Assembly (NCBI GenBank): GCA_965202585.1
Contig: OZ241826.1
Span: 32,550,001-32,614,000, forward strand
Direction of reading: 5' to 3'
From: Thalia democratica
Lineage: Eukaryota
Length of the DNA stretch: 64,000 nt
Position numbers and translations under genes: made by a program
Shown: piece by piece, positions 34,050-64,000 of the stretch
How positions within the stretch are numbered: the stretch's first letter is position 1
Layout: the number at the start of each line of letters is the position of its first letter
Notes under the pieces: generated by a model
Databases searched by the model: none
The model's input: the letters and a program-made list of their open reading frames with translations, nothing else
Told to the model about the DNA's origin: nothing

Positions 34050-34949
34050 AAAGTTTATTGCAAACAAAATACAAAATAGAAGTACTTTTCGGACACGCTC
34101 TTCAGTATTTTTTCGTGTCAAAACAAGCTGAAATAATGATTAACTGATAAAAACTAATAAAACTAAGTATTTAAGAAAACAAATTAAATTTAACACAATA
34201 GTAGTAATTAACAAATTAAGGCAATCGTTTAATCAGAAATAATATAAATGTAACACAACTTTACTAATCAACTAATTTAAGTTCAACGAATTAAACAAAA
34301 TGGTCGAATAAACAAATTTCTTTTGTTTACAGAGCTCTGGCTTTAAGCTTAAAATGTATATAGCTTCTAAAGTTTTTAGGTGAAATTCATTACGAGCAAC
34401 TGATATTATTTTGAAGTTGTCCACTTTGTAGTTTTCGACACACTTAGGATTAGTAATCAGGTGTTGACCAATCGCTGAACTACTATTTAGTTTTTCCAAA
34501 TCATCAAATTTCTTTTCGTCGTTACATGACTTCATCTTGTTTAAAAGGTTTTTTGGTATATGTTGGTTAATTCTTGCAATCAAATTGTTACTCGTTCTAC
34601 CCACGTATGTTTTTTTACATAAACATACAAATTTGTAAATTACATTGCTGGTGTTTAGGGTGGGTAATTTATCTTTGTTTTTAATCTGAAACAGTTTATT
34701 GGTTGAGTATACTATTCGTAAATTAACAGATCTATAGCCATTTTCTACTATTTTCTTCAAATTATTATGCAAAACTGTATTCTGATTGTATGGCAACTTA
34801 AGGTATACCGGACACTTTTTTGGACCAAATTTTATTGACTTAAACCTTGTCTTTGTTTTTTGTATTGTGTTCTTTATTATGTCTAGAGGGTAACCTAAAG
34901 TCGCAAAGATTCTTTCCACATTTGATAATTCTGTTTCTAAATATTTTTC
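34050..34949 (-). mobile_element. 5'-truncated Penelope-like retroelement (PLE)
   Basis: Encodes the RT C-terminal region plus GIY-YIG endonuclease. Flanked by the 13-bp direct repeat ACTGTTATTCATT (34037-34049, 34950-34962). The 3' end has a hammerhead motif and an AATAAA. Confidence 0.88.
34073..34111 (-). ncRNA. Minimal type I hammerhead ribozyme motif
   Basis: Minus strand reads AAAATA-CTGAAGA-GCGTGTCC-GAAAAGTACTT-C-TATTTT. It has a 6-bp stem I, the CUGANGA and GAAA core, a palindromic stem III (AAGTACTT) and a UUC cleavage triplet. Stem II is only about 1 bp. Confidence 0.75.
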
Positions 34950-34961
34950 ACTGTTATTCAT
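34272..34961 (-). CDS. PLE RT-thumb/GIY-YIG endonuclease fragment, 229 aa, uninterrupted
   Basis: VIYKFVCLCKKTYVGRT...RINQH, SSAIGQHL and LEAIYI...KPELCKQ match the Penelope-type GIY-YIG layout. EL..VERIFATLGYP is typical of the PLE RT C-terminus. The first four codons come from the TSD. Confidence 0.8.
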   Translation of the reverse strand: MNNSEKYLETELSNVERIFATLGYPLDIIKNTIQKTKTRFKSIKFGPKKCPVYLKLPYNQNTVLHNNLKKIVENGYRSVNLRIVYSTNKLFQIKNKDKLPTLNTSNVIYKFVCLCKKTYVGRTSNNLIARINQHIPKNLLNKMKSCNDEKKFDDLEKLNSSSAIGQHLITNPKCVENYKVDNFKIISVARNEFHLKTLEAIYILSLKPELCKQKKFVYSTILFNSLNLN

Positions 34962-49600: not shown

Positions 49601-52600
49601 TAAATTTCTCATTTAAAGTACTAAGTTTAAACTTTGATTTTAAATATTTTAAAGTTGTTATTGTGTTTATGAAAATTAGAATTCTTTGGTTTTGCAATTT
49701 TACACAAGTCTATAGAATTCTAACTTAAAATTAAATTGCTTGAAAAAAGACTAATGATTCTTTAGATAATCATACTTTCATAAAAAAATAGCATCTACTT
49801 TTGTTATTTTCAGTATTTTATTTGTTTTAAACCTATTTGCTTTACTATTTTCAATAACCACTTTCAAAAACAAAAACAACTTAAGAATAAACAAGTAAAT
49901 GTTTAGTTTAAAATTTATAGCATACAAACGTTATATCTTATGTTTGCAGTTATTTTTACTACATCTTAAAAAAATAAAATCTTATATTTGTCATTGATAC
50001 TATAAAGGTAAATAAAAAAATATGGTTATAAATTTACAAAATATTATTTAAAACGTTGTGAAAACTTTGTTTTCATACAAACCTGTGTTGTAAACTAAAA
50101 AACTTTTTATTTTTAATACATAGTAATGCACAACCCTAAACAGCAGTTAATGCGTCTAAACAACTTTTGAGTAAATAAATAAATAACTTGGTAATTTAAT
50201 AAATTATAAATCAATAAAAACTTTTTTTTTAACAAAGTGAAACTAGTTAACTGTTATTTGCTAGTACTGAAGGAGGACGCAATGAAAGTTATGACATGAT
50301 CGAAAATTATAAAAGACAACATAAGAAAAAAAAGTTACAAACAAAGCTTTCAAATGCCAACAATATTTCTTTTTGGTGTTTTGTAAGTTTGTAGTTTGTT
50401 TTGTAATTGAATTGGTTTTTAAATATTTTTAGCGCATTGTTATTAAGATCTGAAAATAGAAATTTACAGTAAATAACATTTTATCTTAAACTTTTTTTTA
50501 AACTTTTAACAAAATATACTGTTTCACAAAGCTTACAGCATTTCTATGAAATTGTTTAAGGTTTTTAAAAACTTTATGTCTTTAAAACTGTTTGTTTTAT
50601 ATAAAGCTACTGTATAAAAAAATATATCTATATATTGTTTGTAAATAAAAAAAAACTAAATTTATTTTAAAGTATATCAATTTTAAACGTTGTTGTTTGA
50701 TTAAAAAATATCTGTTGTCTTGTATTTATGTTGATATTGTCATTTTCCAAAAGTAGTAAATTACATAACTCTCTAAATCTATCAATGTTTGTAGTATAGT
50801 TTTTACCGATATGAAGTTATAAATATATGTTGCTGAAAAACATATTACCTATATTTTTTTGTTCTTGTCAGGAAAGTTGTTAACTTCAGTTTTATGCAAT
50901 TATTTTCGCTAAAGTTTTAAATTTGTGTTCATAATGTTTTGTATGTCCTCTTGTCATTTTTAAAATGTAAACATAAAATTTTGACATTTAGAATAATAAA
51001 AAAATCCAATACATTTTTCAAACCTGCTGCAGATATAGGTATTTAAACGCTAAAGTAATCAAAAATTGCATTTTCAGCTTTAATTGCTTTAGTTTCTAGT
51101 CGGTTACTCAATAAATGTCTTTTAATAACTTATTACTATATAAAATATATATATTCATTGATCAATTATTTTTCTATTATTATTAGACTTTGATTAATAG
51201 AACTAAGATTAAATCATTACAACAAACTGTAGACAATTTTTTTAAAGTATTGTTTAGTTTAATGATGAACAATTATGTGTTTAGGTCATAACTAAAAACG
51301 TTTTTAGCCAATTCCTCCTTTAAAGAGTAGAAAATATTTTAATTGCTATAACTTTTTTAAATGCATAATTTATATTTTTTTTCTCTAATAATTATTCTTT
51401 CAAGTCGTTTACAGTTTTGATTTTTTACTTCAAACATTTTAAGTTTTTTCGAAACATAAACGTTGATAATTTAGAAAGTTATTTATGTGTAACTGTTACT
51501 TTTATCATAAACATTTTGTTTTAAACACTCTCATTGTATTTCATAATTTTAATTTTTTTAGTACTAAACACTAGGTTGATTTTTTAAGTTGTTTGTTTTA
51601 TTTTATATTATTTAAACTTTTTAATTTGTAGTATAGTATAAATTCAGAACTTATTTGTAACTATTAAACTAATTTACTTTTAATTTATTTATCTTTGCAA
51701 GAATATCGAGTCTTCAAGTCCTGACAAATCTTTATAGGAAAGCATTTCTAATGTTTCCAGTATGTCAAGTCGCAACAATATTAGGCGACGGAGTTAATTT
51801 TTGGGTCTTCAAGAACTGAACTGGTTCAACACTTCAACAAAAAGTATCCAACTTATTAGACCAACCAACAGGCTGAAACTTGCGCTTACGGTTTAATAGG
51901 ATAAATGTACATTTTAAGAGGTCTTTGCAGATTCAGCATTAATTTCGACCAAGATCGACCCCGCACTCGAAGAGTTTGGAGTCGAGTTTGAAAGTTAACC
52001 AATGAAATTTACGACCGATGCGCAACCAGGTGGTTGCTTTAGTTGTCAGAGGCAATAAACAAGGAAGTTAGGAAATTCATACGTGATAGACGGAATGTGG
52101 GAGGCGAGTCACGAGGACGTTCAGGGAAAATGTACGTTATGGTTATTGAAACAAGATAATAAAAAGGAAACAAAATAAGTTAACACAAAAGAACAAAATG
52201 TACATGATGGGTGGTTGCCCGGACAACTGCGAATTCTTCGACTGTTTCATCTAGCCATTACTATTTAACGGTTAAAAGTACGTCACGGCTAGAACGGACT
52301 GCTGTTTAATGGGGACGAAGAGAAACCGAACGAAGTTGGATTAAGAAATTAAATGCTTGCAGTGATTGGCTCTGAGTGCTATAATAAAAAGGTGAGCTGT
52401 TTATTTTCTTCTACGTATTATACTATTTATCAATGTAGCTTTTAAAAACATTTAAAATAGCCTTAATAGACAATTTTAGGTACTACAATCACTAAACACA
52501 AAATACACAAAATAATCTACCGTGCATAGTTATTAACAGTAACATTATTTTAAAATAAATCTATTACTTATCTTTATTCAATTTTAAACATTATTTTATA

Positions 52601-57550: not shown

Positions 57551-60500
57551 ATGAATCTGCTAAATGTGCAGCAAAAACAACTCTCAAAACCGTATACTTC
57601 AAGTAAATACCATGCATCACCAAGTTTACTTTCTCCAAACCAATGCGTAAGTTTATGTCTGAATGATAGTTTTAAAATTTTTAAAGATAAAACAATTTAA
57701 ATTACGGTTGAAGGTTATAATTAATGGTACATTTAACTCACATTTAGTTTCAAACAGAAGCTTCATTTTTTGGTTTTTAAAATTATTAAAGTATACTTCA
57801 ATTTAATTTAGAAAAACCAGAGTATAGAAAATTTATTTATATTTGCCTTTTTAGCCACCCAATATCAGTTCTTCAACTTTGAATCCTGAAGACAAATGCA
57901 GCCAATGTGTTGCTGCCAATGTGTTTTTAAACTACAATGAAAGTTTCCAACAGCAACAAGCCTACCCTGAACATCAAAGCAATCTGATGCAACCGCAACC
58001 ACATCCACACTTTCAACAGCAACCAATATTACCGCAAGCTGCGCTACCATGTCAGTGTGATGGAATGAAACAACATCAACTAGTTGCCCAGCAGACACCA
58101 GAAGATGACTTTGTGCAACACACCCAACTACCACACCAACTACAAGTACAATATCAACATCTACCACAGGTTCAAACACATGTGCTGGAGAAACCAGAAG
58201 GTGGTTTTGCTGAAGTGCAACCGTATACACAACTTCTACCACAAGTTCAAGAACATGATCAGCTACAAAGTGAACGTTTTGCTGCTAGTAGCAGTGATCA
58301 GATTCAAGATTTTAACGCTCAACAGTCTAGAAAGTATAATGAGAAGCATAACAACTACGTTGCATTGATAAACGCAGGTTAGTTTTTTTAATTAGTTTGA
58401 CAATTTTTGTTTAAGAAATTAAATTATAACGGTGTACAAAAACTATAACATAGAATAGCTATTTTTATATGACGTTTTATGAACTTAAAATTTACATTTT
58501 ATTTTAGATAGGCCGAATGACACTTCTCAACTAAACAACAAAAAGACGAGGTTAGTTAGTTTAAAATTTAAACAAGAATTAGTTATTAACCACGGCTTTA
58601 TTGAATTATCATGAAAGGGTTTTAAAAATAATGTTTTCAGAAAGAGGACTACTTTCAACCGGTATGCCTTACAGTATCTGGAAAGCAGATTTGCAGTACA
58701 TCCAAACCCCAGAAGTTATAATCTAAAACAAATAGCTGAAGACTTAGGGTATACAGAAACTATTGTTAAGGTCTCTTTTTTTTTTGATAAGCTCATATTG
58801 TATGGTTAATGTTAATTAAACGTTGATTTAGAATTTTTGCTATATAAAAAGTAAACTTTATGACTTTTTCCCAAAATTTGAATAATACACATTACTTTAT
58901 TCGGAAAAGTTAAAGGGTTTTATAACTAAAATATAACATTTCTTTTAAAACAAATCTCTATTAAATTTGTTACTTTATAAACTTTATGATTTTCTGTGAT
59001 ATTTACTTACGTATTTTTTATACCTTCTACCTTTTGAAAATTATTTTAAACACTTATAACTAACTAAAACGAGAACAAATTTCTATATAATTTAAGCTAG
59101 GATGATGTTTAAGTTATTTCTTTTAAAGTAAGTTAGACTTTATTTCCTTCTAAAAGTTTTTTTATATTTTAATATGTTTTTTTATAGACCTGGTTTAACA
59201 ATAGGAATGCAAAAAGGAGAAGATTAGAGAAAGAACGAAGAGAAGGTGAATAATTTTTAATAAAATGTTAAGCAATAACATTAATTAAAACAAACTGTTA
59301 ATAACTCCAATTTTATTTTAAAATTCTTAGTATTAACGAAGCTGATAAAACTAAAAATAAACAATGCGTAAACTACCCAAAACTTTAATATATTTAAAGC
59401 AAGTATTTTTTCTACATACAACCAAAAACAAAATATATACAAAATGTATTGCTTTACAGCTGGTCTACAAAATACCGCAGTCAACCATTTTTTCTCTCAA
59501 GCTCATCAAATGGTAGTTTGTTTTTTATGTAAAAATTTATATTTTGTAATATTTTTGTGTGTTTAAGTTTTGTTTTTTTCATTTTAAATCGTTTGTTCAC
59601 TATCTATTTTCTTAGGCTCTACCACAAAATACTTACATTCGAAATAGTTCAGTTGAAAGAAATCATCAGGTAATTTTGTTTAAAACTTGCTTTATTTTTC
59701 ATTTTCTTTTGAAACAGTTTACACGTTTTACTTTACCTGTTTTCGAAAAAAAACATAATATTTTTCACTTTAGGCTGCACTAGATGCGATGTTGTTGCCT
59801 GCAAAAAATACAGCTGAAATCACAAGCAACTTAGCTAACGAAGCAGATGATAGGTATGTTTAAGTACATTATAATATCTGCGTCAATTAATTTTTTGTGA
59901 AATTTTAAAGCTTTCCAATATTCATTTAAGCTTTTTAAAACTATCCTTGCGTAAAGTTTTATAAAGAGTACTGAAAAAAATTAGAACATGAAGTAGTAAT
60001 TACTAGTTTTAACATGGATTTTGTTTGCTTTATGTTTTTAAAAGTTTTATATGTACAGTAATCAAGAAGCTTCCTCGCAAAACTTGTTGACATTTGAAAA
60101 CTTGCTTGGAATCGACAAAATTGTAAGTTGATAATTTTAATTTTCAATTATTTTTTTAAATAAAATTAATGGTTTAATAGTTTTAGCTAAATATCTAAAT
60201 AGTAGTTATACTTGAAGTTTGGATTAATTTTCATAATCGATCAAAGTTACTTTTACTTTCTACCATAGCTATGTCTTTTTTCAAATTACTATCTCAAAAC
60301 TTTAGGATACGCTAGATACGAAATTACATGAAAGTAATAACACATCTGAAATCTCTAACACCTTTGCTCAGAAAAAACGTACAAGGTAGATTCAAGTTAA
60401 ATTTGATGCTTATATTTAATGTTATATATATGTTAGATTTAATAAATTTATTATATTTATGGCATATAAAATGTTTTTTTATGTTATAGCTCAAATGTAT

Positions 60501-61570
60501 AAATAAACTGGTGTATGGTGTTTTTTACTCCATACATCAGTTTAAACGGAATAATATTTAATAATTAATAAATAAATTAACAGTTTATATTTTTACTTGT
60601 TTAGTTTTAGTTGATATATCCACAGTAATCAAGAAGTGCTTTTTAACATTGAAAGTGATGAAACTGCAAAGACGCCCTCGGGATTTATTCAAGAAGATTC
60701 ATTCACTGCTGAATACTTACTAGGCATTGTAAGTTTTGTGTTATAGTTTGATTGTTTTTATATCAGATTTACTCAAACCAAAGTTTTAATCGTTTTGAAT
60801 TAATACTTATATGCTAGATAGCAGGTGTAATAAAAAATAATAAATAAAGGATTAATTTAAAATAAAAAATAATTAAAAAATAAATAATGTAATAAAAAAA
60901 TAAAAAAGTAATAATAAAAATTTATTAATTTAGTTAAATAAAAACCGGTTTATAAAAAAGTTGAAAAACATATATTTCAACTTACAATGTTTAGGATACT
61001 GATGTTCATAATGAAGTTGGAAATCAGAACGAGCTTCATAATTCAACTGGCAGCAACAAAAGTAACTTTAACATTGAACAAGGGAAGATCACTGAAGGAA
61101 GTGATGATTCTGAACAAGCGGAAATAACTGATAAAAGTAAGCTAAAATTTAAAAACAAGAAACAAAAGAAGAATTAAGGCTAAGGAATCAGAAATTAGGG
61201 TGTAATAAAAAAAGACCCATTTACGAAAATTAAATATGCTTTTTATGTTATTAGACAAAACAACTTCAAATGTTGTATTATTTCAATATAAAAATGTTGT
61301 ACGTTTTGTTCTATAATTTTGAAAAATTAATAGCTATATATTAAACATTTTTTTAAGCTGCATTTGAAAATTTTTATCTAGGAATTACTTCACACAGATT
61401 TGTTTTCTGCAAATGAATCACCTACAAGTCTGCATACTTCCACAGAACTCGATAAAAGCGATACGGACTCTTTTAAAGAGATGATAGCACAGGCTGCGGA
61501 AAGTGTGCGGAATTCGCCTACATTTAATTTTGACATCAGCACCATTGACTTCAGTGACCTCAAGTGGTGA
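57551..61570 (+). CDS. Divergent homeodomain transcription factor, 14 coding exons, about 552 aa (Q/P/H-rich N-terminus, homeodomain, acidic S/T/N-rich C-terminus)
   Basis: Manual model with GT-AG introns and consistent phases: 57551-57646, 57855-58377, 58508-58550, 58641-58770, 59188-59245, 59460-59512, 59616-59669, 59774-59853, 60059-60122, 60306-60385, 60626-60728, 60995-61136, 61255-61298, 61382-61570 (1659 nt, ends ...IDFSDLKW-TGA). An acceptor at 57537 indicates an unidentified upstream exon. The 61255-61298 mini-exon is least certain; an alternative acceptor cacacag near 61397 also restores frame. Confidence 0.85.
58543..59229 (+). other. Homeobox split over three exons: KTRKRTTFNRYALQYLESRFAVHPNPRSYNLKQIAEDLGYTETIVK|TWFNNRNAKRRRLE
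   Basis: Conserved homeodomain positions R5, F8, L16, F20, W48, F49 and N51 are in register. Phase-0 intron lies between codons 46 and 47 (58771-59187). Confidence 0.93.
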
Positions 61571-64000
61571 CTGTTTTTGTTCGTATGAGCTGTTTTACAG
61601 AACTATTAGAAAAACTAACTCTAAATTAAACTTTATAGAGTTAATGTGTGCTCCTAAAATGGACAAAAAAGATAAATGTTTAAAGTTATAATTTTGCTTT
61701 TATTATTACTGGCTTAGAAAAATTTAGAATTTTGTTAAAATTTAAAATCTCATTTCAGTTTTTTTAGTTTTGCTGTTCTGATGATAACGATTAAAAGTTT
61801 AAAAAAATTTTGATCAAGATAAGTTGATTGTGTTAGTAATTTAGAAAACTTCTGGTTAGAATAATATTCAAGAAAATTGTATGATGAAATATCAATAGAA
61901 ACATTTAGACTATTTTAACTTGAAATCTTCTGGTCCCTTTTAGTTTCTTATCTATGTGTTTTTATTATTTTGGTTTTAACAAAAGTATATCGTTGTAAAT
62001 TGATTGTTGCTGTTTAGTAAAGTTATATTTTTTAGTAAATTTGTCGTTTAGGTAAGAAATAAACACTGCGAATTATTGTGAATTTTGTTATATAGACAAG
62101 TATACAGTTAAATGATATATAAAAAGTAAAAATTAATATTTTAAATTAAATATTGTTCTAGTATAATATTTAAAATAAATACCAGTAAAAATCAAACCTC
62201 TCGTCGTTACTATTTTTAAAATAAATTTAATCACTATAACGACTTAAAAAAAAATTTAATTAAATATTTAGGTGTTTAATAACTAAAATAAACACATTTC
62301 TAAAACTTTTTTTGTTGAAAATAACAGTTATTTAACAACTAAAATTTTAAGCATTTATTAACGCAAGAATAAAGTTTGTTTGTAAGGATATTTTAATTTT
62401 TTTTTTGTACTTGTGTGCGTTTTATCACCACTAACTTAGAAACGTATATTTTAGCCACAAGTATTTTTTACCTTTTCTTGACATAATAAAATAAATAAGT
62501 TCTAAAAGTAGTCATACAAGAAAAGATTGTAAGAATCGAACAAAATGCTTTAACTTTAGTGCAAACATACTGTAAGGTTTTTTAAAATTTTTATAATAAA
62601 AGTAAAGTTTAAGGTTTAAGATGTTTTAGCTACACAAAAAACGTTTCAGTTATCAATAAAATCCTCTAATATAGACAAATTTAAACAATTAAAAACATTA
62701 TGGAGTTTCAAAAAATCTTGTTTTTAAGAGCTTATGTTGGATAAAGTTAGGAAAAATTTAGAATGTTCTAGATACTAATTGCATAAAAAAATTTGTTTTG
62801 TAGTTTTAGATATATTTAGCTCAATTGTTTAACAAAATTAACCTGTGTTGAGTTTCTACTAACATTTATTTAAGTAATTTATGTTTAAAATAAGTATTTA
62901 GATATGTAATTTTAGTGTTTGAAAATGGTATTTTTATGTAAAACTCAATATTTATTTTACTAAAATAAATTTAAGAGTAATGTTTATCTAATAAAGGGCT
63001 GACCTGAGATTGATAATTTTAACTTTCAGAGACTTTTGTTGAATTTAGTTAAAAAATTGGAAGCAGTATGAATATTAAAGAATATTAACATATACATGAG
63101 CAGCTACATTACAAATAAAATATAAACATGTTTTTTTATATCTAGACGTATAAAACTTTTTTAAAAATGTTTAAAGGACCGCAACTCAAAAAGTAATAAA
63201 TATAAAAAAATATAAAAATAAGAAGAGCAAAAAAAACAGTTTAAGAGGAAATTTAATTTGTTTTTACGCAAATTATTTTTGTAAGCATTTAAAACAGATT
63301 TTACTTTACAACAATATATAAAAATTGATGTTTTTATCTTTTACATTTTTTAATAGTTTTATAAGGACGATTTAGGCTGCATTTCGATCTAAACAATCAG
63401 TTCTTAACTTACATAATGCTTAACTGTACCATTTGAACTATGATAAAGTATTTATTTTTATGTCAGTTATAGCACATAGTGTGTGAGGTTAAAAACTTGT
63501 TGCTGAAGAAAATTAAACATTGGCTGATTAATGATATGTCTTTCACTAAATCTAATGACAAATCATGTATATTTTCATGTTTTACATGTCATGCCAAAAT
63601 ACTTTTTTTGCAGAGGTTAAAATGATTTTAAAGAAAAAAGAACGTCAAAATTGTATCATAAAGTTTTTTTGACGGGTGTTAAGTTTAAGGCTTGCTTTAG
63701 CTGTTCAATTGACTAAAACATTATCCTACAGATTTCTCATTTTGAAGTGTTTTAACAAAATTTGTCACAGACAACTGAGATCTAGAACAATAAACCTAAT
63801 AAAATGTACAAACTTTTTTCTGTTGAGTTTTAGATAAATCGTTAACTTTTCTATAAATTGGTAAAGTTTTTGCGTGAGTTAATAATTTTTTGAAAAACCA
63901 TTGATAAAATTGATGCACCCGCTAGCTAAGTTTCTATTTTTAACTCAGTCTTTGACTTTTTACTGTTTCCTACAGCAATACTAATAAGTTAATAAAAAGT

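Follow-up and report, generated by a model that had tools for sequence, protein, structure and literature searches.

When a homeodomain binds DNA, residue 50 recognizes the two bases that follow the core on its 3' side, residue 47 contacts the fourth base of the core, and R53 holds a backbone phosphate; N50 and N53 are outliers among homeodomains generally. POU homeodomains are marked by C50 in the recognition helix, and in HOPX the homeodomain acts through protein contacts and not through DNA binding. Mammals also possess fast-evolving, lineage-specific homeobox families, such as Obox, Rhox and ETCHbox. Here we analyzed a homeobox gene in a 64,000-nucleotide stretch of the 802-Mb genome of Thalia democratica (assembly GCA_965202585.1, contig OZ241826.1, positions 32,550,001 to 32,614,000). 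This whole stretch is called the window below, its contig is called C1 (where it covers 32.55-32.61 Mb), and positions given without a contig name are those of the window. From its sequence, we consider it reasonably probable (about 60%) that the gene is intact and spliced and belongs to a small homeobox family, restricted to one lineage, which we could not place in any known family.

Five exons on the plus strand (57551-59245) splice into an open frame of 283 codons, with GT and AG at the ends of every intron. Codons 219-278 encode an ungapped homeodomain of 60 residues, reading KTRKRTTFNRYALQYLESRFAVHPNPRSYNLKQIAEDLGYTETIVK and then TWFNNRNAKRRRLE. Exon 4 (58641-58770) carries homeodomain positions 3-46, which cover helices 1 and 2 and the first part of helix 3, and exon 5 (59188-59245; TWFNNRNAKRRRLEKERRE) carries positions 47-60 and five further codons before a phase-1 donor, G/GTGAAT (the slash marks the splice junction). 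A phase-0 intron lies exactly between K46 and T47, and exon 5 supplies T47, N50, N51, N53, A54 and K55. Joined across this intron, helix 3 reads TWFNNRNAKRRR, with W48, F49 and R52 completing the series from T47 to K55; the asparagines at positions 50 and 53, which a first-pass annotation of the same DNA had pointed out, are thus confirmed by the splice of exons 4 and 5. No second helix-3 exon was found within the window, and contigs from two DNA runs, which may stem from the same sample as the genome assembly, match exon 5 with no listed difference.

Exon 4 alone passes the Pfam Homeodomain model (PF00046) with E values of 6e-8 to 1.5e-8 (32.8-34.8 bits against a cut-off of 22.9), and the same model matches all five of the family members checked. 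The features of the homeodomain superfamily are present (60 residues, W48, F49, N51, R52 and K55), R53 being replaced by asparagine in the window copy only, and the three-residue insertion of the 63-residue TALE domain is not present in the ungapped alignment with reference homeodomains. Look-alikes in the ESM Atlas are described only as 'homeodomain', with scores of 0.77-0.78. The Pfam Pou model (PF00157) finds seven places in the genome, none of them on C1 or C7, which upholds the earlier statement that the gene has no POU-specific domain. Among the 75 genome matches of the LIM model (PF00412), the closest one on C1 lies 17 Mb away, at 49.8 Mb, and none is near the family members on C7 or C1260. 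Judged by these domain models, the predicted protein is a homeodomain protein with no other recognisable domain.

As a comparison sample, 42 other homeodomains of this genome were taken from the Pfam Homeodomain matches and rebuilt across their introns. Position 50 is Q in 28 of them, K in nine, C in three, S in one and G in one, and N in none, while position 53 is R in all 40 that are readable there. Therefore, N50 and N53 are outliers in this genome, and the first-pass description of the combination as atypical holds. In the relatives described below, positions 50 and 53 are Q/K, Q/R, T/R and M/R, and N50/N53 occurs in the window copy only; comparison of these helices shows the pair to be derived and private to this copy. 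Thus, the proposal that an altered DNA specificity due to N50/N53 characterizes the whole family did not survive the comparison, and such a change would apply to the window copy alone. The part of the homeodomain specificity literature that was covered contains no mention of N50 or R53 variants. A scan of JGI metagenomes with back-translated TWFNNRNAK gave one match, a 12-residue open stretch without homeodomain context, which was taken as chance.

Exon 4 and, in a second search, a profile built from three sequences served as queries to find family members in the genome. Four intact members were identified, together with one degenerate fragment. Besides the window gene on C1, two members lie on C7, namely C7a (C7:11529329-11529460; Q50/K53, helix 3 VWFQNRKTKKRK) and C7b (C7:11614021-11614143; Q50/R53, helix 3 IWFQNRRCKKRK), and one on C1260 (C1260:4796-4924; T50/R53, helix 3 LWFTNRRRKENV), the last having a domain of 61 residues with one extra residue. 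The fragment (C1:32763107-32763202, minus strand; TRFNNFAFAYIESSFSKEIF...) is located 150 kb beyond the window. Its positions 50 and 53 are unreadable, no recognisable helix-3 exon lies nearby, and it is probably a dead duplicate. The phase-0 intron at 46/47 and a phase-1 GT donor 55-58 nucleotides into exon 5 were found in all five members checked, and also in a metagenomic relative of C7b (contig L065). Such a common gene structure argues strongly that these sequences descend from one ancestor and that one or more exons follow exon 5.

Outside this genome, sequence and structure collections were searched with exon 4 or exon F (described below) alone as the query. An exhaustive phmmer search with exon 4 against 1.84 billion cluster-representative proteins returned seven matches, only one of which is close (P0001, from a metagenome, 73% identical), in line with the lineage restriction proposed in the first-pass annotation. 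P0001 is encoded on L011, an 811-base ENA metagenome contig that also contains exon 5, TWFMNRRAKKRI, with M50 and R53. A profile search of a word-indexed collection further identified P0008 and P0009, both of the C7b type, on marine-metagenome contigs, two of which come from study PRJEB4352; the C7b-type contig L065 spans helix 3, VWFQNRRCKKRKIEG. All relatives from outside the genome are on ENA marine-metagenome contigs. Scanning JGI metagenomes with the family alignment gave no relative, and the open frame of exon 4, used as the query of a word-indexed protein search, gave no candidates in the range of 35-112 amino acids.

Substitution patterns were then considered. Over exons 4 and 5, the window gene and L011 differ by a non-synonymous rate (dN) of 0.19 and a synonymous rate (dS) of 1.17, giving a dN/dS ratio of 0.16; their exon DNA is 75% identical, and their intron is hardly alignable (62% identity versus 55% for shuffled sequence). 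The homeodomains of C7b and L065 have a dN/dS of 0.25. In a second haplotype of the window gene (run X2), exon 4 carries two synonymous differences and one conservative replacement, L13I. As measured by such comparisons, the homeodomain is under purifying selection, and the flanking regions are far less constrained. Within the homeodomain, the recognition helix seems to have changed relatively faster on the window branch, dN at positions 47-58 being 0.237 between the window gene and L011 and 0.034 between C7b and L065 (0.159 versus 0.099 for exon 4), on counts of six substitutions versus one.

Upstream of exon 4, the gene model consists of three exons on the plus strand. Putative exon 1 (57551-57646), obtained from reading of the sequence and a splice model, opens with an ATG, spans 32 codons and reaches its donor, GTAAGT, in phase 0. 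It is the least certain exon. Exon 2 (57855-58377) has 523 nucleotides and 174 codons and is rich in Q, L and P and of low complexity, which agrees with the Q/P/H-rich exon devoid of a POU-specific domain that the first-pass annotation had described. It is the longest open frame of an AT-rich region (GC content of 0.39 against a background of 0.22) and is single-copy in the genome. Glutamine accounts for 40 of the 218 residues N-terminal to the homeodomain, neither exon 1 nor exon 2 has a Pfam match, and exon 2 likely encodes an activation or disordered region. Exon 3 (58508-58550), recognized from its AG/GT borders and frame continuity, is 43 nucleotides long, encodes DRPNDTSQLNNKKT and ends two bases into the R3 codon; it contains the beginning of the N-terminal arm of the homeodomain. 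In addition, a patch of 600 bases (51800-52400) that lies 5 kb before the gene and occurs only once in the genome stands out by a GC content of 40%, the background being 22%. Neither a long open frame nor an Rfam match was found in it, and it may serve the homeobox gene as a promoter or another regulatory element or represent a first exon that is non-coding.

Because the phase-1 donor of exon 5 is conserved, the protein should continue past this exon. The probable terminal exon, exon F (61398-61570, plus strand), comprises 57 codons and a stop, ending in ...SPTFNFDISTIDFSDLKW*, and its acceptor, acag/AT, is in phase 1 and fits the exon 5 donor. Between exons 5 and F, five candidate cassette exons, all open, bounded by AG and GT and on the plus strand, were found at 59784-59853 (A), 60059-60122 (B), 60306-60385 (C), 60626-60728 (D) and 60995-61136 (E). 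Together they amount to 459 nucleotides or 153 codons of acidic, S/T/N-rich sequence, and their phases chain without a stop, so that there are two in-frame options, namely exon 5 to exon F (340 amino acids) and exon 5 through exons A-E to exon F (493 amino acids). Exon A resembles exon C (both from 80-nucleotide exon blocks) and exon B resembles exon D, the latter two both starting with (S)NQE and having an LLGI motif near the end, a pattern that points to internal duplication of a unit of two exons within exons A-D.

A metagenome contig, L066, aligns to 60591-62104 with about 89% DNA identity, introns included. The counterpart of exon F on this contig (P0010) is 79% identical, stops at the same place, and differs by in-frame indels only, with a dN/dS of 0.18. 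Exons D and E are also open on L066 and keep all splice sites, with dN/dS values of 0.79 and 0.55, respectively, indicating weak constraint. In each of the two C7 paralogues, a single exon, the terminal one, follows about 1.4 kb further on, and its acceptor has the acag/AT form seen in exon F. The similarity between exon F and these terminal exons is weak (six of 1000 shuffles reach the score; hhalign P=0.009, probability 4.5%). A tblastx comparison found no conserved C-terminal exon common to the window gene and the C7 paralogues, and exons A-F have no Pfam match. On balance, exon F is probably the last exon, and exons A-E are possible cassette exons that may be included in the transcript.

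Several observations weigh against the view that the window gene is an intact and functional member of its family. A search of sequencing runs found the gene in two DNA runs of one sample and in no RNA run, and the contigs of these runs that contain the gene span exon-intron borders and show no splice joints. The join of exon 5 to exon A or exon F rests on a splice model, and the strongest-looking acceptor, at 59773, would stop the protein after 15 more codons. Allelic differences are mostly non-synonymous in exon 2 (eight versus four synonymous, second haplotype of run X2) and in exons A-F (eight versus three). L011 may be the orthologue of a distant species or a paralogue, its status being ambiguous because L066 is about 89% identical in DNA including introns while the intron of L011 hardly aligns. 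Moreover, the counts behind the faster recognition helix of the window branch are small. Finally, with R53 lost, DNA binding could equally well be weakened or lost.

An alternative reading is that the window copy is a duplicate in decay or under relaxed constraint, or that its homeodomain, like HOPX, acts through protein contacts without binding DNA. The loss of R53, invariant in the rest of the sample, and of Q50, a residue that sets specificity, a recognition helix changing faster than that on the C7b branch, the finding of the gene in DNA runs and in no RNA run, the degenerate family fragment 150 kb away, and flanking regions that are near neutral within the sample would all suit such an origin. 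They are set against a frame that stays open across five to eleven exons with canonical splice sites throughout, a homeodomain dN/dS of 0.16, a terminal exon that has kept a dN/dS of 0.18 and in-frame indels only against a relative differing by about 10% in DNA, and the retention of R3, R5, W48, F49, N51, R52 and K55. We regard decay or a HOPX-like role as unlikely, and the window gene as a real and probably functional family member.

If the window gene is functional, the layout of its product would be that of a sequence-specific transcription factor: a Q/P/H-rich disordered N-terminus, a 60-residue homeodomain, and an acidic, Ser/Thr-rich C-terminus formed by exon F with or without the five cassette exons. 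The Q-rich N-terminus and acidic C-terminus would fit an activator. Binding to a TAAT-like core would be expected because the docking residues are kept, namely R3 and R5, which enter the minor groove, together with W48, F49, N51, R52 and K55. In the window copy alone, the ancestral Q50 and R53 have changed to asparagine, with T47 carried alongside. A relaxed or shifted 3' preference and a lower intrinsic affinity would be expected, since N50 is shorter than Gln or Lys and N53 loses the salt bridge; the basic run K55-R56-R57-R58 may partly offset the lower affinity. The analysis shows the gene structure, the family, the selective constraint and the private N50/N53; that the gene is expressed, has these C-terminal exons and encodes a protein that binds DNA with a changed specificity is a deduction.

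More speculatively, the family might be a young homeobox lineage private to one pelagic marine animal group, in which position 50 (N, M, Q or T) is diversifying under selection and the T47/N50/N53 copy has a binding site that no characterized natural homeodomain has. This is a tentative idea to which we give rather low credence. If it were true, the family would be a natural experiment in the evolution of homeodomain specificity, which is usually attributed to a handful of residues that rarely vary in nature. Here, one scaffold occurs in Q50/R53, Q50/K53, T50/R53, M50/R53 and N50/N53 versions in closely related genes, so that a few binding assays could measure the effects of these natural changes, among them the loss of R53, which is nearly invariant. 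The weight of the example is limited by the fact that N50/N53 is known from one gene in one genome.

Some other observations were made in the genome and the window. The Pfam scan of the genome gave 870 homeodomain candidates. Near-identical Islet-type LIM-homeobox genes form two large tandem arrays of at least 12 copies each, one at C4:36.17-36.71 Mb and the other at C6:69.82-70.24 Mb; along both arrays, matches to the LIM and Homeodomain models take turns, and the homeodomain contains RVIRVWFQNKRCKDKK. More LIM arrays are found at C7:43.2-43.5 Mb and C10:8.46-8.54 Mb. At C7:50.9-51.8 Mb, at C6:73.43-73.45 Mb and on the small contigs C99 and C604, there are long open frames without introns (470-1383 amino acids), each with at least two very divergent homeodomains (helix 3, for example, WFYSRRF, WFANRRD or WFGDKRAG). 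A POU gene of this genome (locus L020, C9:55538000-55544000) has, upstream of its intact homeodomain exon, a second, truncated start of that exon (NPRPSSELLTSTAE, then a stop). Within the window, a 229-codon open frame on the minus strand (34272-34961) carries a GIY-YIG-like motif, YVGRTSNNLIARINQH.

The class of the family was examined by comparison with solved structures and by phylogeny. With the window sequence alone, the best structure is LHX9 (E=5e-5), followed by Pit-1 (0.03), POU6F1 (0.08) and aristaless (0.09); with a five-member profile of the family, POU6F1 (3d1n) comes first (1.8e-3), followed by an unnamed homeobox protein (4e-3), LHX9 (5.6e-3) and ALX4 (6.2e-3). The resemblance to POU6 reported in the first-pass annotation is therefore real, but it is not discriminating, because LHX9 and ALX4 score alike with the family profile. 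A maximum-likelihood tree was built from 51 homeodomains, with class labels that are our own reading of signature residues, and with three POU loci, about twenty other homeodomains of the genome and any confirmed POU6 outside the sample. The tree recovered the ANTP (support 100/99), SINE (98/90) and POU (100/97) clades. In this phylogeny, the family forms a clade of its own (97/86), within which the window gene and L011 group together (98/92), but no class is strongly supported. A branch with 86/84 support puts the family together with LIM, ZFHX and POU, opposite PRD and ANTP, and the family is weakly sister to three POU homeodomains (85/38). Approximately unbiased (AU) tests rejected a sister relationship with SINE (p=0.008) and did not reject PRD (p=0.157), Lhx2/9 (0.286), ZFHX_c (0.249) or ANTP (0.16). 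The position of the intron at 46/47, which the first-pass annotation had called typical of PRD-class genes, is confirmed, but it is not specific to that class: it also occurs in Evx, Lhx2/9 and one ZFHX homeodomain of this genome, as well as in all sampled PRD genes for which the second exon was found. As far as these data go, the family is distinct from known ones, and we could not assign it to a class among the POU, Lhx2/9 and Alx resemblances.

Compared with human POU6F1 (PDB 3d1n), the family shares A12, P24-x-P26 and L38-x-Y40, of which A12, P24/P26 and Y40 are unusual. These residues, the first place of POU6F1 with the family profile and the sister position to the genome's three sampled POU homeodomains in the best tree could indicate descent from a POU-class, POU6-type gene after loss of the POU-specific domain. 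We think that this origin is rather improbable: the POU6F1 score is marginal, with LHX9 and ALX4 within about threefold of it, the support of 85/38 is low and AU tests keep PRD, Lhx2/9, ZFHX and ANTP as sisters. The three sampled POU homeodomains of the genome are split at 22/23 or 23/24 and not at 46/47. The genome's own POU homeodomains have C50, whereas position 50 is N in the window gene and Q, Q, T and M in its relatives. The POU-specific domain itself is absent here, without a match on the window chromosome or C7, and the POU6 orthologue of this genome, if any, is outside the sample.

Lhx2/9 (human LHX9, PDB 2dmq, and the genome's own copy at C6:54565070, whose LIM exons lie at C6:54567812 and 54568155) shares with the family the phase-0 intron at 46/47, F20-x-x-x-x-N-P, LKQxA and A54. 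Apart from the close relative, the best named matches of exon 4 are Lhx2/9-type fragments (P0003 and P0007), which, together with the LHX9 structure match, might suggest that the family is a LIM-class derivative that has lost its LIM domains. Such a derivation appears very unlikely, given that identities are 27-35% (27% over exon 4 for the genome's true Lhx2/9), that LHX9 loses first place with the family profile, that the family and Lhx2/9 are not grouped in the tree, and that no LIM match lies near any family member.

PRD-like genes (ALX4 and aristaless, and the genome's Otx, Gsc and Alx-like genes) resemble the family in the 46/47 intron, in a possible homeodomain-only layout, and in an ALX4 score close to that of POU6F1. 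They differ in that the PRD signature residues are mostly absent from the family, with Y25-P26-D27, R44-V45-Q46-V47 and W56 not found, and in that the 86/84 branch separates the two; a sister relationship was not rejected by the AU test (p=0.157).

In its behavior, the family resembles the mammalian Obox, Rhox and ETCHbox families. These families are likewise small and lineage-restricted, and in them the homeodomain scaffold is kept while DNA-reading residues vary from copy to copy, much as the copies described here have N, M, Q, Q or T at position 50. The likeness is behavioral only, there being no sequence relationship, and whereas the mammalian families are usually arranged in tandem arrays, the four members in this genome are dispersed or loosely linked.

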